64,000 bases of DNA from Ylistrum balloti (lineage: Eukaryota): the NCBI RefSeq assembly GCF_031769215.1, contig NW_026781993.1, positions 434,001 through 498,000 on the forward strand, written 5' to 3'. Below the pieces are notes generated by a model. It had not been told where the DNA came from. It saw nothing but the letters and a program-made list of their open reading frames with translations, and made no database searches. Shown here piece after piece: positions 38,838-51,400 of this stretch (positions are counted from its first letter, which is position 1; every line of letters begins with the position of its first letter). The position numbers were made by a program, and so were the translations under genes.

Positions 38838-39437
38838 CAGTTTCTTTAAAGACAATCACCTGTATATTGAAAAAAAATCCTATGGTTTCAACATTGCTCC
38901 ATGTTCTTCACTTGCAAAGTTTCATCGTACAGTTGGTCGACTGATGACGGGTCTTCAGATTTCACATAGCTCAATACATTTCAGATAGAAAATTATCATC
39001 CACCCGGAAGTAAATATACTTTTGGATACTCTCTGACTTTATTCGTCAATCATTGCTATATTGGAAAGAATAAAAATAAAAGGAAGAAAGTTTCATTTTT
39101 TTTTTGTTTGAGACAACATCGAATTGAAAACGCTTGTGTTTTGAGTTTCCGAAAGTTATCTTCCACTTTCTGTGGAAATTTGATATTTTTCATATAAATT
39201 TGAAAGCACGTATGCCATCTTATAATATAACAAAGATGTTGATTGGCACACTCACCGAAGAGTAACCAATCACATGTCGCCTTACAAATATTGACGTCAT
39301 CGATAGAAATTCGCCATTTGCAATGTACGAGGAACAAGGAAGGTTGTGTGGAGTGGCATTTTGTTTTTCATTATGAACATTTTTGGCCTGTGATTACACC
39401 ATTTGTGTGAAAGACTTTTACTAATTCGTACGTGAAG
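38838..39437. promoter_or_regulatory. Compact bidirectional promoter region between RAB30 and PCF11
   Basis: ETS CCGGAAGT at 39004-39011, opposed CCAAT boxes (ATTGG 39242-39246, CCAAT 39266-39270), palindromic CRE TGACGTCA at 39292-39299, YY1-like CGCCATTT at 39312-39319. Candidate minus-strand donors for the RAB30 non-coding exon at 38860 (CAG|gtgatt) or 38838 (CTG|gtatgt). Confidence 0.6.
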
Positions 39438-42400
39438 ATGGAGAACGAAGTTATCAGCGACTATCAGTCGTCCCTGGTGGATTTGACGTGCAACAGCAAG
39501 CCGTTGATCAACATGCTGACCATGCTGGCAGAAGAAAACGAGCAATATGCATCGCATATTGTCGAAGTGATCGAATCGCATATAAATCAGGTCTTCTATT
39601 ATTTTTTCGATTTATAATACTATGGTTATAGCAATATAGTCTATTTCGCTTCGTTGAATTGAATGATGTGTTAGTCTGTATAGTCGTTCTCGTTGTTCAC
39701 CCTGTTTAGTCACGTGACTGATCACAAGAAACAGCTGTTCATAAATTAACAACTTCGTTTCATGCTTATTTTGCTATTTTGTAATGTGTCTTTATTTGTT
39801 TATTCTAAAGAAATCTTCTTATCCCTTCTCTACTATATTAATTTGTTTTTCAGGCTATATATTGTTGTCTTTATGAGTACATATCTTTGGCATTGTATAT
39901 TTATTGTGTACAACTTGCTGATATATGAATAAAGATGACATTGCAGTGTCTGTATTTTGTTAACAGTGACGCTTATGATGAGCCAATAACAGAATGGAAA
40001 GTTTCTTTGAGAAATCCAATGATAATTTTAGGACTGGAATTTTTTGAATTTGTAACCATTTACATATCAGCAAATCCAGTTACCATATGTGCATTTCATA
40101 ACTGGATTATGTACCTACTGACAGATAACAGTGATCAATCTACATGTCAGTCTTGAGTCCTGGACTTATGGAATTTTCATGGAACTCAGAAATACTTTAA
40201 AATTTGCATTGCGGGACCCATTGTTTTAGCAATATTAGCATAAAGTTGAAAAGGACTCATGAAAATAAATTGTGGACTGATCACTGAGATAAGCAAAAGC
40301 ACTGGTGATAACTAATATAAAGTTAAAGTATCCTTGATATATCACGTGTGACTTGTCAATATCAGACTACCCCAACATACAGGAACCAACCCATAGACAT
40401 ATAGAATGCTAGTAATGTGACGTTTAAGGTGGAAGAATTTCTCATTCGTGAAATAATATGGCACAAGTATTTAAATAAAAATCTCCGAAATTTGTTGGCA
40501 GTATTGCAACTACATTAATCTAAACCACCAAATTTAAATCAATAATATTCAGAACCTCTTTGTGAGTGCAAGTGTAGTCAAATGTGTTATGTTTTTATTT
40601 AAAAAGTTAAAAAATCAATATTGACCGACTGCATTTCAGAGACAAAGTGGTATCATAAGTATTTTAAATAGAGTAAGTATAAGATTAAAATGCAATACTT
40701 CAAAAGATTGTTGGAACTGAAAGTTTGCTGAAGCAGAAGTGCTCATGTGTTCCCTTATAAGTTAAGGCTTTGCATAAAATTTGTAATGCTTAGACTGCAT
40801 CATGTCTATTTGGTCAAAAAGGTTATCAAATACTTCTTACATGAATTGTTTAAGTGTTACTTTTCTGTTATAGGACAGAAATTAGTAGAAGTTAAACTAG
40901 CAGTTGTATAAAATTAATGCAACATCTCACATATAAAACATTATATTTACCCTAATATTTATGAAATTCTTGAAATAATTCTGGAAGACACCATGACTTG
41001 TTTCTTGCTATACTATAACATGTCTGGTTGAAAATTTGACTGGCCTGGACAGCAGGCCTCTGAACCATCACCCAAATTATCTAAAAACATACCACAGAAT
41101 GACTTGCTCAAAACAGAGAAGAATTTTTCTCTTTTGATTAATAAAAAAATTTAATGCTGACAACTTCAACAAACTTTCCCTTTTAAACTGACAGTGTTGG
41201 TTTATATTAGTAAAGTTTAATTGCATACTTAGATGAGGTCTGTTTTAAAAAGTGGAATACATTTATTTTCTGCTAAGCTGAGAAATCTTAGCATAATTCT
41301 ACCTAACTTATTTTGAAGAGAACCATAAAGAAAGTTATGGTCACTTAGTCTTCAATTGTATGGATGGTTTTACCAACAGAACTACTGCAGTGTAATTGAT
41401 GTTATTGTGTTATGAAAAATAATTTGTTTGAAGAATAAAAGAAATGAAGAAGATATTTGATGAAGACAACTGAAGAAGTGATGTGATGGCGAAGACCAAT
41501 GAAGAGGTGATTGATGTGGTCAGCTGTGACAGAAATGCCTGAGAGATGATGAGGTTCAGTCAAGCCAGATGGTGAAGAAGACTGGAGAGTCTATGATGTA
41601 TATGTTCTGTTCACACTTGTTCATACTTTCTGTATTGTTGCTATGTACTTGTGTGTTTTCCCAGCTTAGCGGTTTTAGGGCAGTGATCTAGCCCATTATC
41701 ATTTGTTTCTTTCTTTTTTTCGCTGTAAGATTATCAACTTTCATGTAAGTAATTAGTGAACCAGATAAATATATATGCAAAAACTTGAAATTTTTTTAAA
41801 AGTTGTGATTTAATTGTTTTACTAAAACCCCATGGGAAAACACTATTTATATGGTCTGGTGGTGAATCCAAGGAGCATTGTCCAGACTTTGTTTGTGATC
41901 TGCAGTAGTTCTGATTGTCATGTCATCCATATCATAAAAATTGAAGTCAAGTAGTAATTGAACATTATTCATGCTCAGAAAAGGTAATGGCAGTGCCAAC
42001 TGAAACAGATTTCTTCTCTTAAAATGACAATTTAATCTATAATCAAAATCTAATTTAAATGACTTAAAACGTTTCATGAACACAGGAGTACAGTTGGTTT
42101 ATAACATCTTCTGAGACCCGGTTGGTTGTAATAAGAAAACCAACTTTGATATGTGAATAATTTGCAATAAGGACATTCTCTTTTACTAATGAAATCATTG
42201 GATGTTTACCTTGCGTACTCGTGATATTTGACAAAACATGACATGTAGTTTGAAGTGATACATCGAGAGCACAAAGGGTATGAGTAACTGCTAGTTTAAA
42301 ATCCTTCCCTTCTTCCCCTCATAAAAGAAATCATGTGACTTATCTCGCCATAAATTATCTACTTTCATAAGCTTATGAAGAAAATTGCAATTTCATGTGG

Positions 42401-45400
42401 GGATGAAATGCACTGGTCCCGATACAGTTTGAAACCTTTATGAGAATAAATGGTTTGTACTAGTTATTGCTGGAACATTGTATTCATACTAAAATATATG
42501 TTTTCCTGGTATTTATCATGCACACACCGCATTAGTTGTGAAGACTTCAGAAAAAAATAATAAGTATGCACACTAAAAGTAGTCTGTACCAGTTTGTAAT
42601 ATCAGTTGGGACTTGATATTCATCTTGTGTCCAAAGAAAATGTTGCATAATCTGTTATTTACATTGTGGAATCACAGCTAACAGGAAAGTACATGTCGTG
42701 CTCATTATGACCATGGTTACAAAAAAATAGGTTCCTTAATGAGGGTCACTGAATGCAACCAATGTACCATCTCTCACAAGTTACTACGCATACTTAGAAA
42801 AACATTACTTGTGTATTATCTAGAAATTACTGTAAATGTGAATAGCTAGTACATGGCACTGAATAAGTGATGGACATGATGAAAGCATACCAAATGACAT
42901 AATCACTGATGCAGATTTTCCTTGACCTTTATATGACTACATATGCTTTAAAGCGATCATGACAAGCTGACAACAATAAATCTAGACAGAATCGGACCAT
43001 TTTGATAAAAATCCACATGTCCATGTTCTCTACAATATTTAAACATCAAGATTCTACTAATTTAGAAATACGCACTTATTCTGAAAAAGTTTTTAAAGGA
43101 AATGTAAACTGCATCTGATGACATTTATTTTGGAGAATTTATTTCATTCCTGAATGGATATACTAATGTAATGTATATAGATCTGCTTTGATTTCTATAC
43201 ATGGGTCAGGAGGGAAATTCTGTAATATGGAATATTTTTGGCATGGTCGTATGGATTTTTGTCTAAATTTGATCCCTTACTGTCCTCTGTACAGTAATTT
43301 TTGACTTGAATTCGCTGTCCCATTCAAAGACACAGATATACATACCGGAGTGTAAATTCTGTGTTGATAGCTGTAGACATAAAAAGACGACTCAACCAAA
43401 GGAACCAGGTTTCCTGCTTTCTTCAGCCCCGTGGCTGGAATGACATGGACTGTTATATAAATTTTGAAATAAAGATTTTCAACAAATTATTTGTCAGAGT
43501 TTGATATTCCTTGCCCACTGAATTTGGCATGATTCTGAATATGGTTGCAGGGATTTTTCATGTCTCTTATAAGCATATTTAATAGATTTGTTGACCCTCT
43601 AGAAATTTCTAAAAAACATACCATATTTCATGAAAATGCAACCTTTTCAGGTTCATGTCTGGAATTTCATTCACTTCTGGTACCCTAGATGCATGGCTTT
43701 TTTTCCTTGTCGGTCCATGATGTATCCATTTTCATATTTGGTCATTTTATAATGAATAAAAAAAATGTGTGAATGTGTCAAGCATGCAAAGTATTGAAAT
43801 TCTGACCCATTTGGAAGTAATGACTTGGAAAAAGCCATGCAGTGTATCAAACATTCATATATACTTGGATCATTCATTTAATATGTAATGTATTCATTCT
43901 GGAATCAGAATCTATCTCAAACAATCTAAATATTAGAATTTCGGACACAGCTTGATCTGTAAATTCATTTTCAATTTCAATCATATATGGTGAATAATGG
44001 TGTAATTTTATCTGCTTCTGTGTAATGAATGAATACATTACATAGACATCGGAAGATACAAGGTAGACTGTAGCTTCCATATGGTACAAGTGAATCAATT
44101 GATCGCAGACTTCTTACTGTAAATTACTGGACTGATAGTATACAGAGGGTAAAAATTGAAGAATTATGATTTGTGAACATATTTTGACATTTGCATTGGT
44201 TATCACGATAGTTTGCAATCCATAGTGGAATATTTGAAGAATTGATGGAAATACATCAGGTGTACTGATAAGCATTATGTGCTTCAGACCTTTGACATGT
44301 TGAATGAGACACAACAGACCAATTATACATGATGTAACATTTCCATAGCACCATACTAGTAATTTTAGTAATGGGAGAAATTACAACAGTGTATATGTGA
44401 ATTAGTCAAGTTTTTGAAAAGTTTTGTAATTAATGATCTAGTTAATGAGGTAGTTGGTGTTACAAATTGGAAAATGTTCACCATTAATTGGTTGTGCACT
44501 TTCAGGGATCATTTTGTATACAAAGTGGTATTTGATCTGGGGAAAAAAGTTTTGCTTTAATTTGGTAGCAGTCCATAGTATAGATATATACAGTGATATT
44601 CTGGGACTCCGCTATTTCAGCCAGGACTTGTGCTTTTCAGATGGAACTCTGGACTCACCTGAAAAAATCTTTTTAAAAATGCAATATATAACAACTACTA
44701 AATTTATTTACCTATGCATAGGAAACATTTGAAAGTGAAAGAGATTTATTTGTGAAATAATTTGTGTAAATGGAAAGTTTTTTTGGGGGAATGAAAAGGT
44801 CATAAACCAAACAACTTGAAACTAAGGTTTGATACCTGAAAGTGTGCACTCAGAATGTTGTACAGCCAAACATGACATCTGACTGCCCAATTTGAGTGAT
44901 TATACTGGATTTATATACAAACTGGAGATGTCCAATATTTCTATAGTATGAATTGATATTGACCAATTCAACAAACGATGTTAAAGAATATCTGATTGCA
45001 AGCGAGAAAAAGAAATAACAGCATGCCAAAGTTTTCAAAAAAAAAAGTATTCATAAGTAATTGTAGTTCAACATTATTGAAAGTCATTTTAATGATATAC
45101 AAAACTAAAAAGAGAAAATTTCAAAATAATCCTGTTTTGGTAAGTATAAAGTGCAATATTTTCAAAAGAGATTAAAACGATTATTTCTGATATCTTTCAA
45201 TGGTTTAAATCTCATATCTTACAGGTAATGTAAAACATAATTTCATGTTGTGTTTAGAACAACATGGAGGGGAAGAAAGAGTGGGCTGTGGGAGCCTGGT
45301 TTCAGATTTTACTGTATATCTTTTTATAGCTGTGCTTTCTCATTGCAGATTTTCAAGGTCTGGACTGTTTCTGGAGATGAAGAAGGATTTATGTCTGTAT

Positions 45401-48400
45401 TTCATGTTTTCTGTTTTTGTATTAACAGGCGGATGAAAAGAAGAAACTGCCATCGCTCTATCTAATAGACTCCATTGTCAAGAATTTGCCCAAGACCACA
45501 TATCCAAGTCTTTTTTCTCACAACATTGTCTCAGTGTTCTGTGGAATGTTTGAAAAGGTTAGCATCCAGTGTCATCCTCACATGTAACACAGTGTACATA
45601 ATGATTCATCATGTTGATCCTTTGAAGACGAATGATGTCTTTGAAAGTGTTTGACAGAATGTTTCATTGAAAGAATGAGTGAATAAAAATATTTCATAAA
45701 TATGTATGATGTATATATAATCTAATGGATAATATTGAATCAATAGGGATTTGTGCTAGAAACTGCTGTACAATTCATGTCAGAGTTTTGTATGAGCATA
45801 TGTCCCTTGAAATTTTTTACTGCATATCTATTCATGCAAGGTATTGACCTGTTGTAATATGATTGGGAATGAGAAGTTTTGTCACAGTGAGGTAGCATAT
45901 GTGCCGCAGTCATTTAGAAAATTATTTTGTAGGGAATTATATTTTATTGCAAGACTCTGAACAGATAGTTGTGATGATACGAGGTGATGGGAATGTCAGT
46001 ATTGGTGAAAGTGAGGAATTTCTTTCAGTGAATCACTTTGATAGTGTTTTTGGTATGTTGGAATATTAATAAAATGGTGTTTGAATCTTGTGTTCAATAC
46101 ATTTCAAGTCTTGAAGCTTAATGATTTGAGAGAGTTTGAGTTTGCATGTCTTACAGATCCTTTTTAGAACTAACAAAATGCATTCAGTAAAAATCCAAAA
46201 GAAAAAAAGCATTGTATTGAAGTAACTTGTCTAGTCAAACTAGCATTAAGAAGTTTGATAAGGAAATTATGGCAAAAGAATATGGAAAGAAATTTTTTTT
46301 AAAAGTCCGATCATTCTGATACCATGTACCATGCTGAACAGAGGAGAAAATGTTCATTAGTATTCATCAATCATCATGCAGTAACACATTTCATACTGAT
46401 AATCATTTCTGTTTTGAATATAAGGAAAGAAAGAAAAATTCCATGTGTTAGTGCAAAAATAAAGTTATAACGTGGATATGATGAATCACATTTCTGAAAA
46501 TGTTCTTTTGGGGCAATCAGATTTGTCTTTTGTAGCCTGCTAATTGTACAAGTAAATGGACCCAGCGATTCACAAAAGAGTTTGAAAGGAAAGTAATAAA
46601 GGTGAAAAACTAGCTGTTCATATGAGAAAATCAGAGAAAAAAATCCAACTTTAATAGAACCAATAAAAAGACTAAGGAACCTCTTGTTATAAGTTTTTAT
46701 TGTTCTGCTGTTATTCAATCGACTGCATGCTAAGTTATACAAGCATTTGTTTCCAGAAACCTACAATCTTAAAATCTTTCCGATATAATTTCTTGACATG
46801 GAAATGATGGGCAACTTTCATTTGACAGTTTACAGCCAAGTCATTAAGGTAAAATCCTACTTAACAGAAGTATGATTTGCTACAAGGGTCCCATTATTTG
46901 AGGAATCACTCATCTCTTTATCTTAATTTTATCAATCTTTTCTTGTTATTTGCTCACCAGAGACTCCCTGTAATGTAACCTTTCATACAACATGCATGAA
47001 ATGACAATGAATTTAGGATTTCTGTCTTTTTCTTTGGTCTCTTATTATGAATTGATCTAAGGAATATGTCAAATCCCGCTTATCTTTGAAAATAAAGAGG
47101 AAGTCAGGACAGGAAATGCCTAACCTATGAGAATATTGGTAAAACAAATACTTTTTCAGAAGAAAATGTTCTTTGCATACTCTCTTCCATTTCATATTTG
47201 AAATTTTCTTCTATGACTGGAGACAAACTATCTTTTCAGGATACTTGGTTTAATTTAAATTTATTTTCTTTCCTTTTCATGGAGATATCAAATGGAAATT
47301 GAGATGTTTAGTATGAATTCATCAAATTCATAAATATATATATGAGTAAAGGAATCCTTTCATTCCAACACCATCACATGTGACATTGAAATTGTGTTAT
47401 TATTTAACTCGGTACTCTGATAATGTTGTTAGATTAAGCTATGATACTTTCGTTGAGATGGAGACATGCCCTTCATCTTGAGACTATTATGGAACCTGCA
47501 GGTATTGAATTGAAGTGGTAAAATTGAGAAGAAATAAAATGAAATTTATGTACTTTCCTGAGATTGCACACACTGCAGTACATGGTACATTTGTTTCCTG
47601 GTGGAATATAAGTCTCAGTGTATGTACAGGAAATTGTACTTATCCAGGAGATGGACTGTGGAACAGATGGAGAATTTGGTACTTAATCTAGGACTTGCCA
47701 TTTAAAGGAAAGAAATTCTTGTTATATTCAAAATGAAAACACTAAACGATATGGCAGTGTGGTATGTTTACAACAAGTCAAATAGATGAAAGGATTTCTA
47801 AATCAGAAATGTAATGGAGTCAAACTTACAACAATCTGACCATCACTTCATGGATTTACTAACATTAAAGAGCAAACAATTGTCTCTTATCTCTGGATGT
47901 TTGGAAAACAGCTGCCTTTGCTCAGGAGTGAAAATGTCCACGGGACTTGTAAAAAATATTTAAGTTATTTTTTTCCAGTATTCGTATCTGTCATCTGAAT
48001 TCATAGTCACAGTTAATTTCTAATTCTGAAATCATCACATCTATCAAATATAATATCCAAGTTGTCAGTTCTGAAGTAATTGAAAAATCTTGAACCACTC
48101 ATTGAATATTGGATCCAATTTCGTATGTGCGGTTATCACCTTGCAGGACATTTTGTCTGAATTCATGCACTTTACATACGACTCTAATTTCTTTTCCTGG
48201 TTATAAAAAACAAGAAGAAAACATGCTGTTTTCATTGTTACCTATTTATCCTTCAAGGAAGCCTACTTGGATATTGCCTGTTTATTGAAAGTATATCTCA
48301 TTTTATGTTCAGAGTTAACACTCTTGGTTTATGTAGTTGAAAAAAGCTAATACATGATATAGTCTTGTATCAAATTTAAAGTCATTGCTCTCATATGGCC

Positions 48401-51400
48401 TCTGCACATATCGGTTCAAGACCATTAAACAGGTCAGTTTTATATCCAAGATTTTGCCAACTTTTAGCACTTTTCAGGTTTGATAACATGACACTAGGTT
48501 TATGATCCTCCACCTGACACTTAATGAAGTTTGACTGTTCAGCAAACACAATTCCATTCTAACTTGCATGTCCTTAACAGCTTGTCTTTCAATTATTGAC
48601 ACATTGTGGAGGTCATGATTTTGAAAACAAACACTTTAACTGGTCATTACATAAGTAAAACTGGTCATTACATGCAAACAGTACAACTGGTCATGAATTA
48701 CATACAGTACAACTGGTCATTACATACAAACGGTACAACTGGTCATTACATACATACAATATAACTGGTCATAAATTATTTGCAGTACAACTGATCATTG
48801 ATTGAATACAGAACAACTAGTCATTAGAGTACAACTGGTCATAAAACTATAGGCAGCACTACTGGTCATAAGTTATAGGAAATAAAACTGGTCATTTATT
48901 ACCTGAAAGAAAACTGGTCATCCTTACATACAGTACAACCGGTCATAATTCATATGCAGTAAAACTTGTCATCCTTACATACAGTACAACCGGTCATCCT
49001 TACATACAGTACAACTGTGTAAATGGTAAAAAAATCATTGCTGCTTAAATGTTGCACAAATATCTGTACAATACTTGTAAAGTATGAGGAAAACCATTAA
49101 ATCTGTTTCAGGTTGAGGTAAAATCTATTCAAGTATTTAAGATTGTTAAATTGGCTTTGTAAGAACTTTTTCAGGATATCAAAGTCTGTTGTTCTGGTCA
49201 AATTTTTGTTACCCATATATAGGTGAATGTGACATGCCTCCAAGAGGCTTGAATAGTTGGTGTTCTTCCTGTATAACAGATTTTGATCAAACTTCACATA
49301 GTATTGTCTCCCCTGGTTAAGGTCAAGGACAAAGCCATCACTTCTATCACCAGATATTCTGTTTAAATACAATTTGAATGATATTGCTATACATTGAGGT
49401 CAATTTCAGCTATGAAACACAGGTCATCATTTTAGTATTAATTGGCAGGTGTCTGTTAACCAACAGTATCGTGAAGCAACTAAGTTAAATCTTAGAAGTG
49501 ATCAGTATTCTGTCAGCTAAAGAATCTTTGATTACCGCATTTTAAATGTAATAACTGATGACGAATATTAGCTTCAAAATAAATATTATTTGAAAACAAA
49601 ATAATAATAGACATTTGTTAAACTTGATGTTGAAATAATAATAATAGAAAACTATGGTATACAGTTGTTGTTAGAGTATTAAATATTTGTATCACAAAAG
49701 TGATCAAATGATTAAATATTTGATTATATCTAATTTGGAAGAGAAGATATCTGTTCATGTTTTGCAGAAAAAATGTTTGTAATATGATGTACAGGATAGT
49801 CCAAACTGGAATATCAAATTCAACAAGGATGCGTGGGGGAATGTGTTGATCTTACATGGTTGTGATGAATTTGATATTCACATTAGGAACAAGGACAAAA
49901 ACAAGAATCGGTAAAATTAAGGAACTGCGATGATTTACCATTACAATTTTTTTTTTTTTGAGGGAGTTGGGCAGAGGGGGTATTGATCACCATACCTCTG
50001 CAGGATGACTACTAGAAGGGTGTGTGAAACTAAAATTGCATTTTAATTTATAATAACACTATCTGGTGCTCTGGTTGCCTTCGCTAGGTGGATGAGAAAA
50101 CAAGACAATGTATGTTCAAAGTACGACAGACGTGGAACGAAATATTTCCAAATAGGAAACTATATGCTGTAGATGTACGAGTGAACCTTGTGGATCCAGC
50201 TTGGCCGATCACTGCCCAGCCACCTGTTGAGTCTAGTATCCATGTCAACCCAAAGTTCCTGGCTGCAAAGGTAGGCTTGGTTGACAGGTGTTGTATAGTA
50301 CTAAATAATTACTATTCAATGTCTCCTTAAGATTTACACTTAAATGATAAATGGTAGAAATTTACTGGAAAAATATCCAACCTGTCATCGTTTTTGATAT
50401 TAAGTGATCTTGATCAGCCTTTGATTTCACAATTTGATAGGATTATTTTGGGGAGGGGGAAGAGGTAAGTAGTTGCAGCATATTCAGGAGATGTTGGGAG
50501 GGGGGGGGAACATGATGAATGAGAAAAGTGAGAACAGTAATATTGCATAGCAAGTGTTCATCAATAAGCTGTTGGTGGCCTGCTCGAATAGAATTTCTTT
50601 TTTGTTAAATAGGTGTTTTACATTTGAACACTATTATATTGATTTTCAAAGGTTAGCACACAAAATAGTTTTTAAAGTTCTAAAATGTTGCTTTCTCGGC
50701 TAATGATCTGTCAATTCTTGTTTGTAAGAAACATAGTGCTAAAAGAGAATAGTCTGCTGTATATTGGATAATAAGTGTGATTCTCACAAGGTGACAAGAC
50801 CAATATACTTACAGACAATGCAATGTAAGTGAAGTTGGAGGTATATTTTGCATTTTAAACCTAAATCCTGTTAACTGCTTTGTCACCAGGTCCAAAGGAC
50901 CACGTTGGTCTTTGTAATTACTGTAAGTCACATTCTGACTAAATCTTGTAGGCTTGTAATCCAGTCTTAGACTGGATATATTTCAATTTCAAAATTCATG
51001 TTTTTAAATCGTTATGGAAATAACTTTTTGGTAAGATAAATAGTGGGTTTTTTTTTTCAGTTTTAAATGAAGTTTTTTGAAACAAAAGTGCATTCTGTAC
51101 TAGTTATGGAAACTCAATTGCTGTACATTTCCATGAACAATTTGGACATTTCATCAAATGTTGCATCCACCTTGAATTTATCAGGAATTTTCACACATGT
51201 TAGATATTTAAAGGAAACAATTGTTATTTTAATAGCAGAAAGAAGAAGAGATTTTGGACGACGAAGATCTCATCATCCACGACACTGTAACTGAGGAACA
51301 GGAGGCGTTGATGCGCCAACAACTAATTGCTAAACAACAGGAACTACTCAAATTGCAGCAACAACGTCTCGAGCTTGAACTGAAGGAGACTAGAGCCAAA

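Follow-up and report, generated by a model that had tools for sequence, protein, structure and literature searches.

PCF11 locus and the boundaries of intron 1

The window, that is, the whole 64,000-nucleotide stretch of Ylistrum balloti DNA analysed here (contig NW_026781993.1, forward strand), carries an orthologue of PCF11 on its plus strand. Exon 2 matches the Pfam CID, and the exon-1 peptide retrieves PCF11 N-termini. The full-length proteins of relatives are named Pcf11 and contain Pcf11-specific Pfam domains. All positions below are those of the window, in which a run of N occupies 787-984. The features at the 5' end of the gene are as follows.

39438-39590, plus strand: coding part of PCF11 exon 1, 51 codons, N-terminal third of the CID (direct reading, ORFs)
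39591-39619, plus strand: 5' splice site GTCTTC, very weak, and the U-rich tract behind it (conserved in the related contig L001 as GTCTTT with the same T-run)
45429-45557, plus strand: PCF11 exon 2 (CID), to which exon 1 is normally spliced (Pfam CID match)

Exon 1 opens with the ATG at 39438 and closes in phase 0 with the CAG ending at 39590. A word search with the exon-1 peptide returned, from many invertebrates, 37 homologous short ORFs that continue past exon 1 into the intron, and the exon end is identical in all relatives compared. With exon 1 ending at 39590 and exon 2 starting at 45429, intron 1 therefore spans 39591-45428 (5838 nt); exon 3 starts at 50088. Unspliced read-through meets a stop at 39615-39617, giving 59 aa counted from the ATG, as a first-pass annotation of this DNA had stated. 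The coordinates it gave for the donor, the acceptor-like CAG/G, the TGA, the hexamers, the TGTA motifs, the CA and the GU-rich run were likewise all correct on direct reading.

A very weak intron 1 donor

The donor of exon 1, CAG/GTCTTC (39591-39596), matches the consensus GTRAGT at the GT only and at none of positions +3 to +6. The 13 donors that could be placed in PCF11 were scored with a rough position matrix, so that the scores are approximate. Exon 1 scored lowest (about -2.9), which bears out, for the donors placed, the earlier claim that this donor is the weakest in the gene. By the same rough matrix the donor of exon 12, AAG/GTTATT, ranked second lowest (about -1.4) and the remaining donors scored +1 to +8.8; that of exon 10 reads AAG/GTAAAA. 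The exon 12 donor (59541/59542) lies just past the second zinc-finger-like exon.

A scan of metagenome contigs provided 44 further loci. In about 17 of 19 lineage groups, the donor at this very exon boundary either begins GT-pyrimidine or has some other base than G at +5; the forms seen include GTTTTA, GTTTTT, GTTTAT, GTTAAC, GTTCAA, GTTTCC, GTTTAA, GTTAAT, GTCATT, GTTCTC, GTCTTG and GTTTGT. Departures from this are confined to a gutless-oligochaete clade, in which GTRAAN is seen and twice GTAAGT, and to a single GTGTTG. In the tarpon (L061), intron 1 lies at the same residue and in the same phase: in both species the exon ends 33 residues past the NSKP motif, in phase 0, and is followed by GT. 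The tarpon donor is AAG/GTTTTT, and its 2.3-kb intron contains a lone AATAAA, 1072 nt from the start, which has a U/GU-rich tail. Since the pattern recurs in protostomes and in the tarpon, the weak donor is not an oddity of the scallop, and it fits the report that the 5' splice site of mouse PCF11 intron 1 lies at the 3rd percentile (PMC6428223).

An arthropod-like relative (L058:709-820) has an intron 1 of about 100 nt that contains ATTAAA and starts with the donor GTTTGT; a proximal-site device of the scallop type would hardly fit into an intron of that length. When full-length proteins were searched for other bivalve PCF11 loci, the matches listed comprised only arthropods and one fish.

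A candidate poly(A) site in intron 1 and its conservation

Within intron 1, 338 nt from the donor of this 5.8-kb intron, lies the feature on which the analysis centred.

39898-39965, plus strand: conserved poly(A)-site block (local alignment and blastn against L001)

The block comprises a U-rich/UGUA upstream element, the hexamer AATAAA at 39928-39933, a CA at 39944-39945 and a GU-rich downstream element at 39947-39961. TGTA motifs precede the hexamer at 39677, 39780, 39894 and 39907. The hexamer by itself is about as common as the base composition would give: the plus strand of the window contains 90, with 85 expected, and intron 1 has more copies at 40264, 40474 and 41140, as the first-pass annotation had cautioned. 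A context score, ad hoc and set post hoc, required at least two UGUA within 100 nt upstream, a downstream 15-mer of at least 87% G+T, and a CA; of the 90 plus-strand hexamers, the one at 39928 was the sole site to pass it.

A structured RNA gene in the intron (snoRNA, miRNA or another Rfam family) was considered and found no support. An Rfam search of both strands returned no family match for the block, the best hit being a chance match elsewhere (E-value 0.26), and no stable fold was found there, with z-scores of +0.2 to -0.7 over both strands and both species.

The nearest exon-1 ORF (P0001, 88% identical) is carried by two Logan contigs, L001 and L002. When L001 was compared by blastn with 8 kb of the window, only three pieces aligned: the promoter with exon 1 and the first 29 nt of the intron (to 39619, 76% identity), an upstream block at 38989-39051, and 39916-39965 (84% identity, E 1e-8). 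The surrounding intron and most of the upstream region are no longer alignable. A global MAFFT alignment mis-aligned the block, and a local alignment was used instead. In it, the 68 nt of 39898-39965 scored 60 against L001:1239-1299; 1000 dinucleotide shuffles averaged 22 and peaked at 37, none reaching 60. L001 is identical in the U-rich/UGUA piece, in the hexamer and the bases flanking it, in the CA column and in the spacing from the hexamer to the GU run; the bases that differ fall where cleavage would occur. A cross-species comparison, of the kind proposed in the first-pass annotation, found the hexamer and the upstream UGUA element preserved in one relative. The description in that annotation of a weak donor combined with a genuine-looking poly(A) signal in PCF11 intron 1 is supported.

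The conservation of the block is that between the window and L001. In L003, whose exon 1 is 78% identical, the comparison with the window block gave p values from about 0.07 to <0.003, depending on scoring, and nothing was found between the L003 and L001 blocks. Extension to L004-L008 gave scores within the noise, and comparison of L004 with L006 showed nothing.

It is extremely unlikely that the block amounts to chance motifs with residual, unselected similarity, or that it marks a minus-strand poly(A) signal (TTTATT at 39900) of an antisense transcript. Chance would fit the near-expected number of hexamers. The third positions of exon 1, which are synonymous sites, are 80% identical between the window and L001, so the two species are not very distant, and the minus-strand AATAAA is likewise kept in L001. 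Nevertheless, similarity can no longer be aligned elsewhere in the intron or over most of the upstream sequence, and no shuffle matched the score of the block. TTTATT has no conserved downstream element on its own side, and conservation continues past the plus-strand hexamer, to the place expected for a plus-strand GU-rich element, not leftward as a minus-strand signal would need.

Searches of sequencing runs with the intron-1 region and with 4.2 kb of large exons each returned a single run, X1, which is genomic DNA from another individual. Over 39480-45479 it gave a continuous contig with no splice joints and about 0.6% differences. The differences nearest to the block are at 39621, 39653 and 39813, and none falls in 39854-39965. 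Outside the conserved block, X1 differs from the assembly by a 77-nt skip (40162 to 40240) and by insertions of 10-11 nt after 40118 and 40186. The segment 40240-40291, a dispersed repeat of short length, is the only place matched by dozens of unrelated X1 contigs, and the summed depth there is 92, against about 10 elsewhere.

Conserved DNA-level elements near the block

Further short motifs are shared with L001 on both sides of exon 1.

39004-39011: ETS-like CCGGAAGT, conserved with L001, within the upstream block 38989-39051
39292-39299: CRE TGACGTCA, conserved with L001
39312-39320: YY1-like CGCCATTTG, conserved with L001
39710-39718 and 39730-39739, no strand assigned: two palindromic E-box-like motifs, TCACGTGAC and AACAGCTGTT respectively, both present in L001

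The promoter motifs suggest a transcription start near 39300-39330. TCACGTGAC is an E-box of the CLEAR/USF/MITF-TFE-like type, and CACGTGAC also occurs in L003, about 330 nt into intron 1. Conserved transcriptional elements are common in first introns, and the conservation of the E-box-like, ETS-like, CRE and YY1-like motifs means that DNA-level elements exist near the block. The block itself could therefore be a transcriptional element about 600 bp from the start site, its AATAAA forming part of an AT-rich binding motif with no role in polyadenylation. The promoter motifs and the E-box-like motifs 200 nt upstream are what such an explanation can appeal to. Nevertheless, it seems unlikely. The pattern of conservation is that of a poly(A) site, with an exact hexamer, a fixed spacing to the GU run, a CA column and variable bases at the place of cleavage. 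Ticks conserve a comparable element (below), and an intronic poly(A) site is a known regulatory device of PCF11 in vertebrates and flies. The E-box-like motifs at 39710 and 39730 are probably transcriptional and separate from the poly(A) site.

The proposed mini terminal exon

According to the first-pass annotation, exon 1 would be spliced to a small terminal exon that ends at the poly(A) site. Two features of the window correspond to this proposal.

39841-39853, plus strand: candidate 3' splice site, T-rich tract and CAG, weakly supported (similar string in L001)
39854-39928, plus strand: proposed mini-exon reading frame, 24 codons and TGA, not conserved (direct reading)

The TGA (39926-39928) overlaps the hexamer (39928-39933). 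Use of this exon from 39854 to about 39950 would make it an alternative last exon and yield a 75-aa product. Such an arrangement would suit terminal-exon definition, which links the recognition of a 3' splice site to that of a poly(A) site, and a similar string of 13-14 nt, a T-rich tract with CAG/G, precedes the hexamer in both species, by 74 nt in the window and by 58 nt in L001. Nevertheless, the similarity of the two acceptor regions is at the level of chance (204 to 781 of 1000 shuffles were as good), and under a strict polypyrimidine criterion, by which 12 other sites in the window qualify, the acceptor is rejected. In L001 the frame has 17 different codons and a different stop. Among proteins of 28-89 aa in a collection of 5.8 billion proteins, a search for the product of exon 1 and the mini-exon returned only ORFs that read through from exon 1. 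Neither a 75-aa nor a 68-aa product was present among the short exon-1 proteins of this collection, which seemingly holds no RNA of these species.

The mini terminal exon as first described is thus not supported, and this route is judged very unlikely. The weak donor gives it no advantage over splicing to exon 2; such a donor favours cleavage of the unspliced transcript, not the choice of a nearby acceptor over exon 2. Because the frame is not conserved, the acceptor similarity is at chance and the donor is weak, a read-through transcript was rated above the spliced form. As read from the DNA, an unspliced short transcript of the vertebrate type is more likely than a spliced mini terminal exon.

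Intron 1 in ticks, oligochaetes and a Daphnia-like animal

Four tick contigs were 92-98% identical and too alike to inform, so Ixodes scapularis (L060) was used instead as the partner of a metastriate tick (L054). The best internal alignment of their first introns, 40 nt long, begins at CAATAAACTGTT (L054:4845 and L060:6888). This best-conserved internal piece of the intron carries AATAAA; it scored 35, with a maximum of 32 in shuffles and none of 500 reaching the observed score.

The gutless oligochaetes (L010-L029), whose intron-1 donors are nearer to consensus (GTAAAG, GTGAAA and even GTAAGT), served as a negative control. In six pairwise comparisons of four of their introns, no score exceeded those of shuffles and no hexamer was found. 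This clade may be a lineage that relaxed the device.

A Daphnia-like animal, whose CID is 87% identical to that of Daphnia carinata, is represented by two transcript contigs, L036 and L038. L038 selectively keeps intron 1 (347-1000, 654 nt, donor GTTTAA, with an immediate in-frame stop), its later introns having been removed. L036, from another sample and starting at the same first base, is a fully spliced 5.4-kb mRNA. Intron 1 is thus inefficiently removed in an invertebrate. The retained intron has no AATAAA, and it therefore supports the weak-donor part of the proposal, not polyadenylation.

The Daphnia-like transcript speaks for another account, in which the weak donor acts alone: intron 1 would be spliced slowly or detained, its retention, with the in-frame stop that follows at once, would lead to nuclear retention or decay, and the AATAAA block would be incidental or minor. 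The weak donor also reaches across many more lineages than does any poly(A) block that can be aligned. Nevertheless, this account is judged improbable. It leaves unexplained why AATAAA lies in the most-conserved internal intron pieces of scallops and ticks. Moreover, slow removal of the intron is compatible with a poly(A)-site mechanism and does not exclude it.

Proposed mechanism

The weakness of the donor and the conservation of the poly(A)-site block together suggest that PCF11 intron 1 holds a poly(A) site that is functional, with probable negative feedback; on the sequence evidence, a probability of roughly 0.55 is assigned to this. A deliberately weak 5' splice site would slow the splicing of intron 1, so that the cleavage and polyadenylation machinery could cut the nascent RNA near 39945-39955. 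The predicted product would be a short transcript of exon 1 and about 350 nt of intron, with the 59-aa ORF, and transcription would end early.

PCF11 is a limiting cleavage and termination factor whose dosage sets poly(A)-site choice genome-wide. Since the factor is itself limiting, more PCF11 would mean more use of the site and less full-length mRNA. The level of PCF11 would in this way govern the use of the proximal site and, through it, the amount of full-length mRNA, closing a negative feedback loop. We infer both the use of the site and its dependence on PCF11 dosage.

Relation to known systems

In mouse, the weak 5' splice site of PCF11 intron 1 is combined with a strong intronic site in autoregulation (PMC6428223), and the intron-1 PAS1 mechanism is established for human and zebrafish PCF11 (PMC6458999). 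The arrangement in the window resembles vertebrate PAS1 in affecting the same gene and the same intron, the CID being split after exon 1 in phase 0. Both have a donor of the very weak class (AAG/GTTTTT in the tarpon, 3rd percentile in mouse) and an AATAAA-type site in intron 1 that is conserved between species and whose use would truncate the CID. Unlike the human site, for which tandem hexamers are reported, that of the window has one hexamer. Its distance from the donor is 338 nt, within an intron of 5.8 kb; in the tarpon the distance is 1072 nt, within 2.3 kb. The block of the window is without sequence similarity to vertebrates and is known here from comparison of sequences.

The earlier statement that such regulation had not been described outside vertebrates is outdated. 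In Drosophila, PCF11-RC is an annotated 819-nt isoform that encodes part of the CID (PMC11368245). Its premature site depends on the levels of PCF11 and Cbc, in which Gallicchio et al. (2024, PMC11368245) see a parallel to the vertebrate loop. With this precedent, a claim to the first invertebrate case fails. The fly and the scallop share an invertebrate PCF11 gene with a premature site very near the 5' end and a transcript that contains part of the CID only, both of them predicted in the scallop; a vertebrate-like feedback has been proposed for the fly. They differ in that one is an arthropod and the other a lophotrochozoan, and in that the fly data are RNA-based while those for the window are comparative only.

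A further parallel is CstF-77 / su(f), likewise the gene of a cleavage and polyadenylation factor, whose expression is restrained by a conserved poly(A) site in one of its introns (Luo et al. 2013, as cited in PMC6428223); as described in that citing paper, the site is U1 snRNP-sensitive and conserved from flies to vertebrates. The gene and the intron are different, and it is a mechanistic analogue only. New here are the lophotrochozoan candidate, the conserved tick element and the GT-pyrimidine donor found across phyla.

Implications

The GT-pyrimidine donor and the proximal poly(A) site may tentatively be regarded as an ancestral bilaterian self-limiting device that pre-dates the protostome-deuterostome split, kept in molluscs, ticks, flies and vertebrates, with some annelids having relaxed it, their donor now stronger and no conserved block left; this is a possible history, held with less than even confidence. 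If the brake is common to molluscs, ticks, flies and vertebrates, few feedback circuits known to act in mRNA 3'-end formation would be older. Its concrete and testable signature is the recurrence, at one and the same intron position in different phyla, of a GT-pyrimidine donor, which also indicates that purifying selection can keep a non-consensus splice site weak. For the annotation of the scallop genome, a short PCF11 transcript is predicted that gene models would miss.
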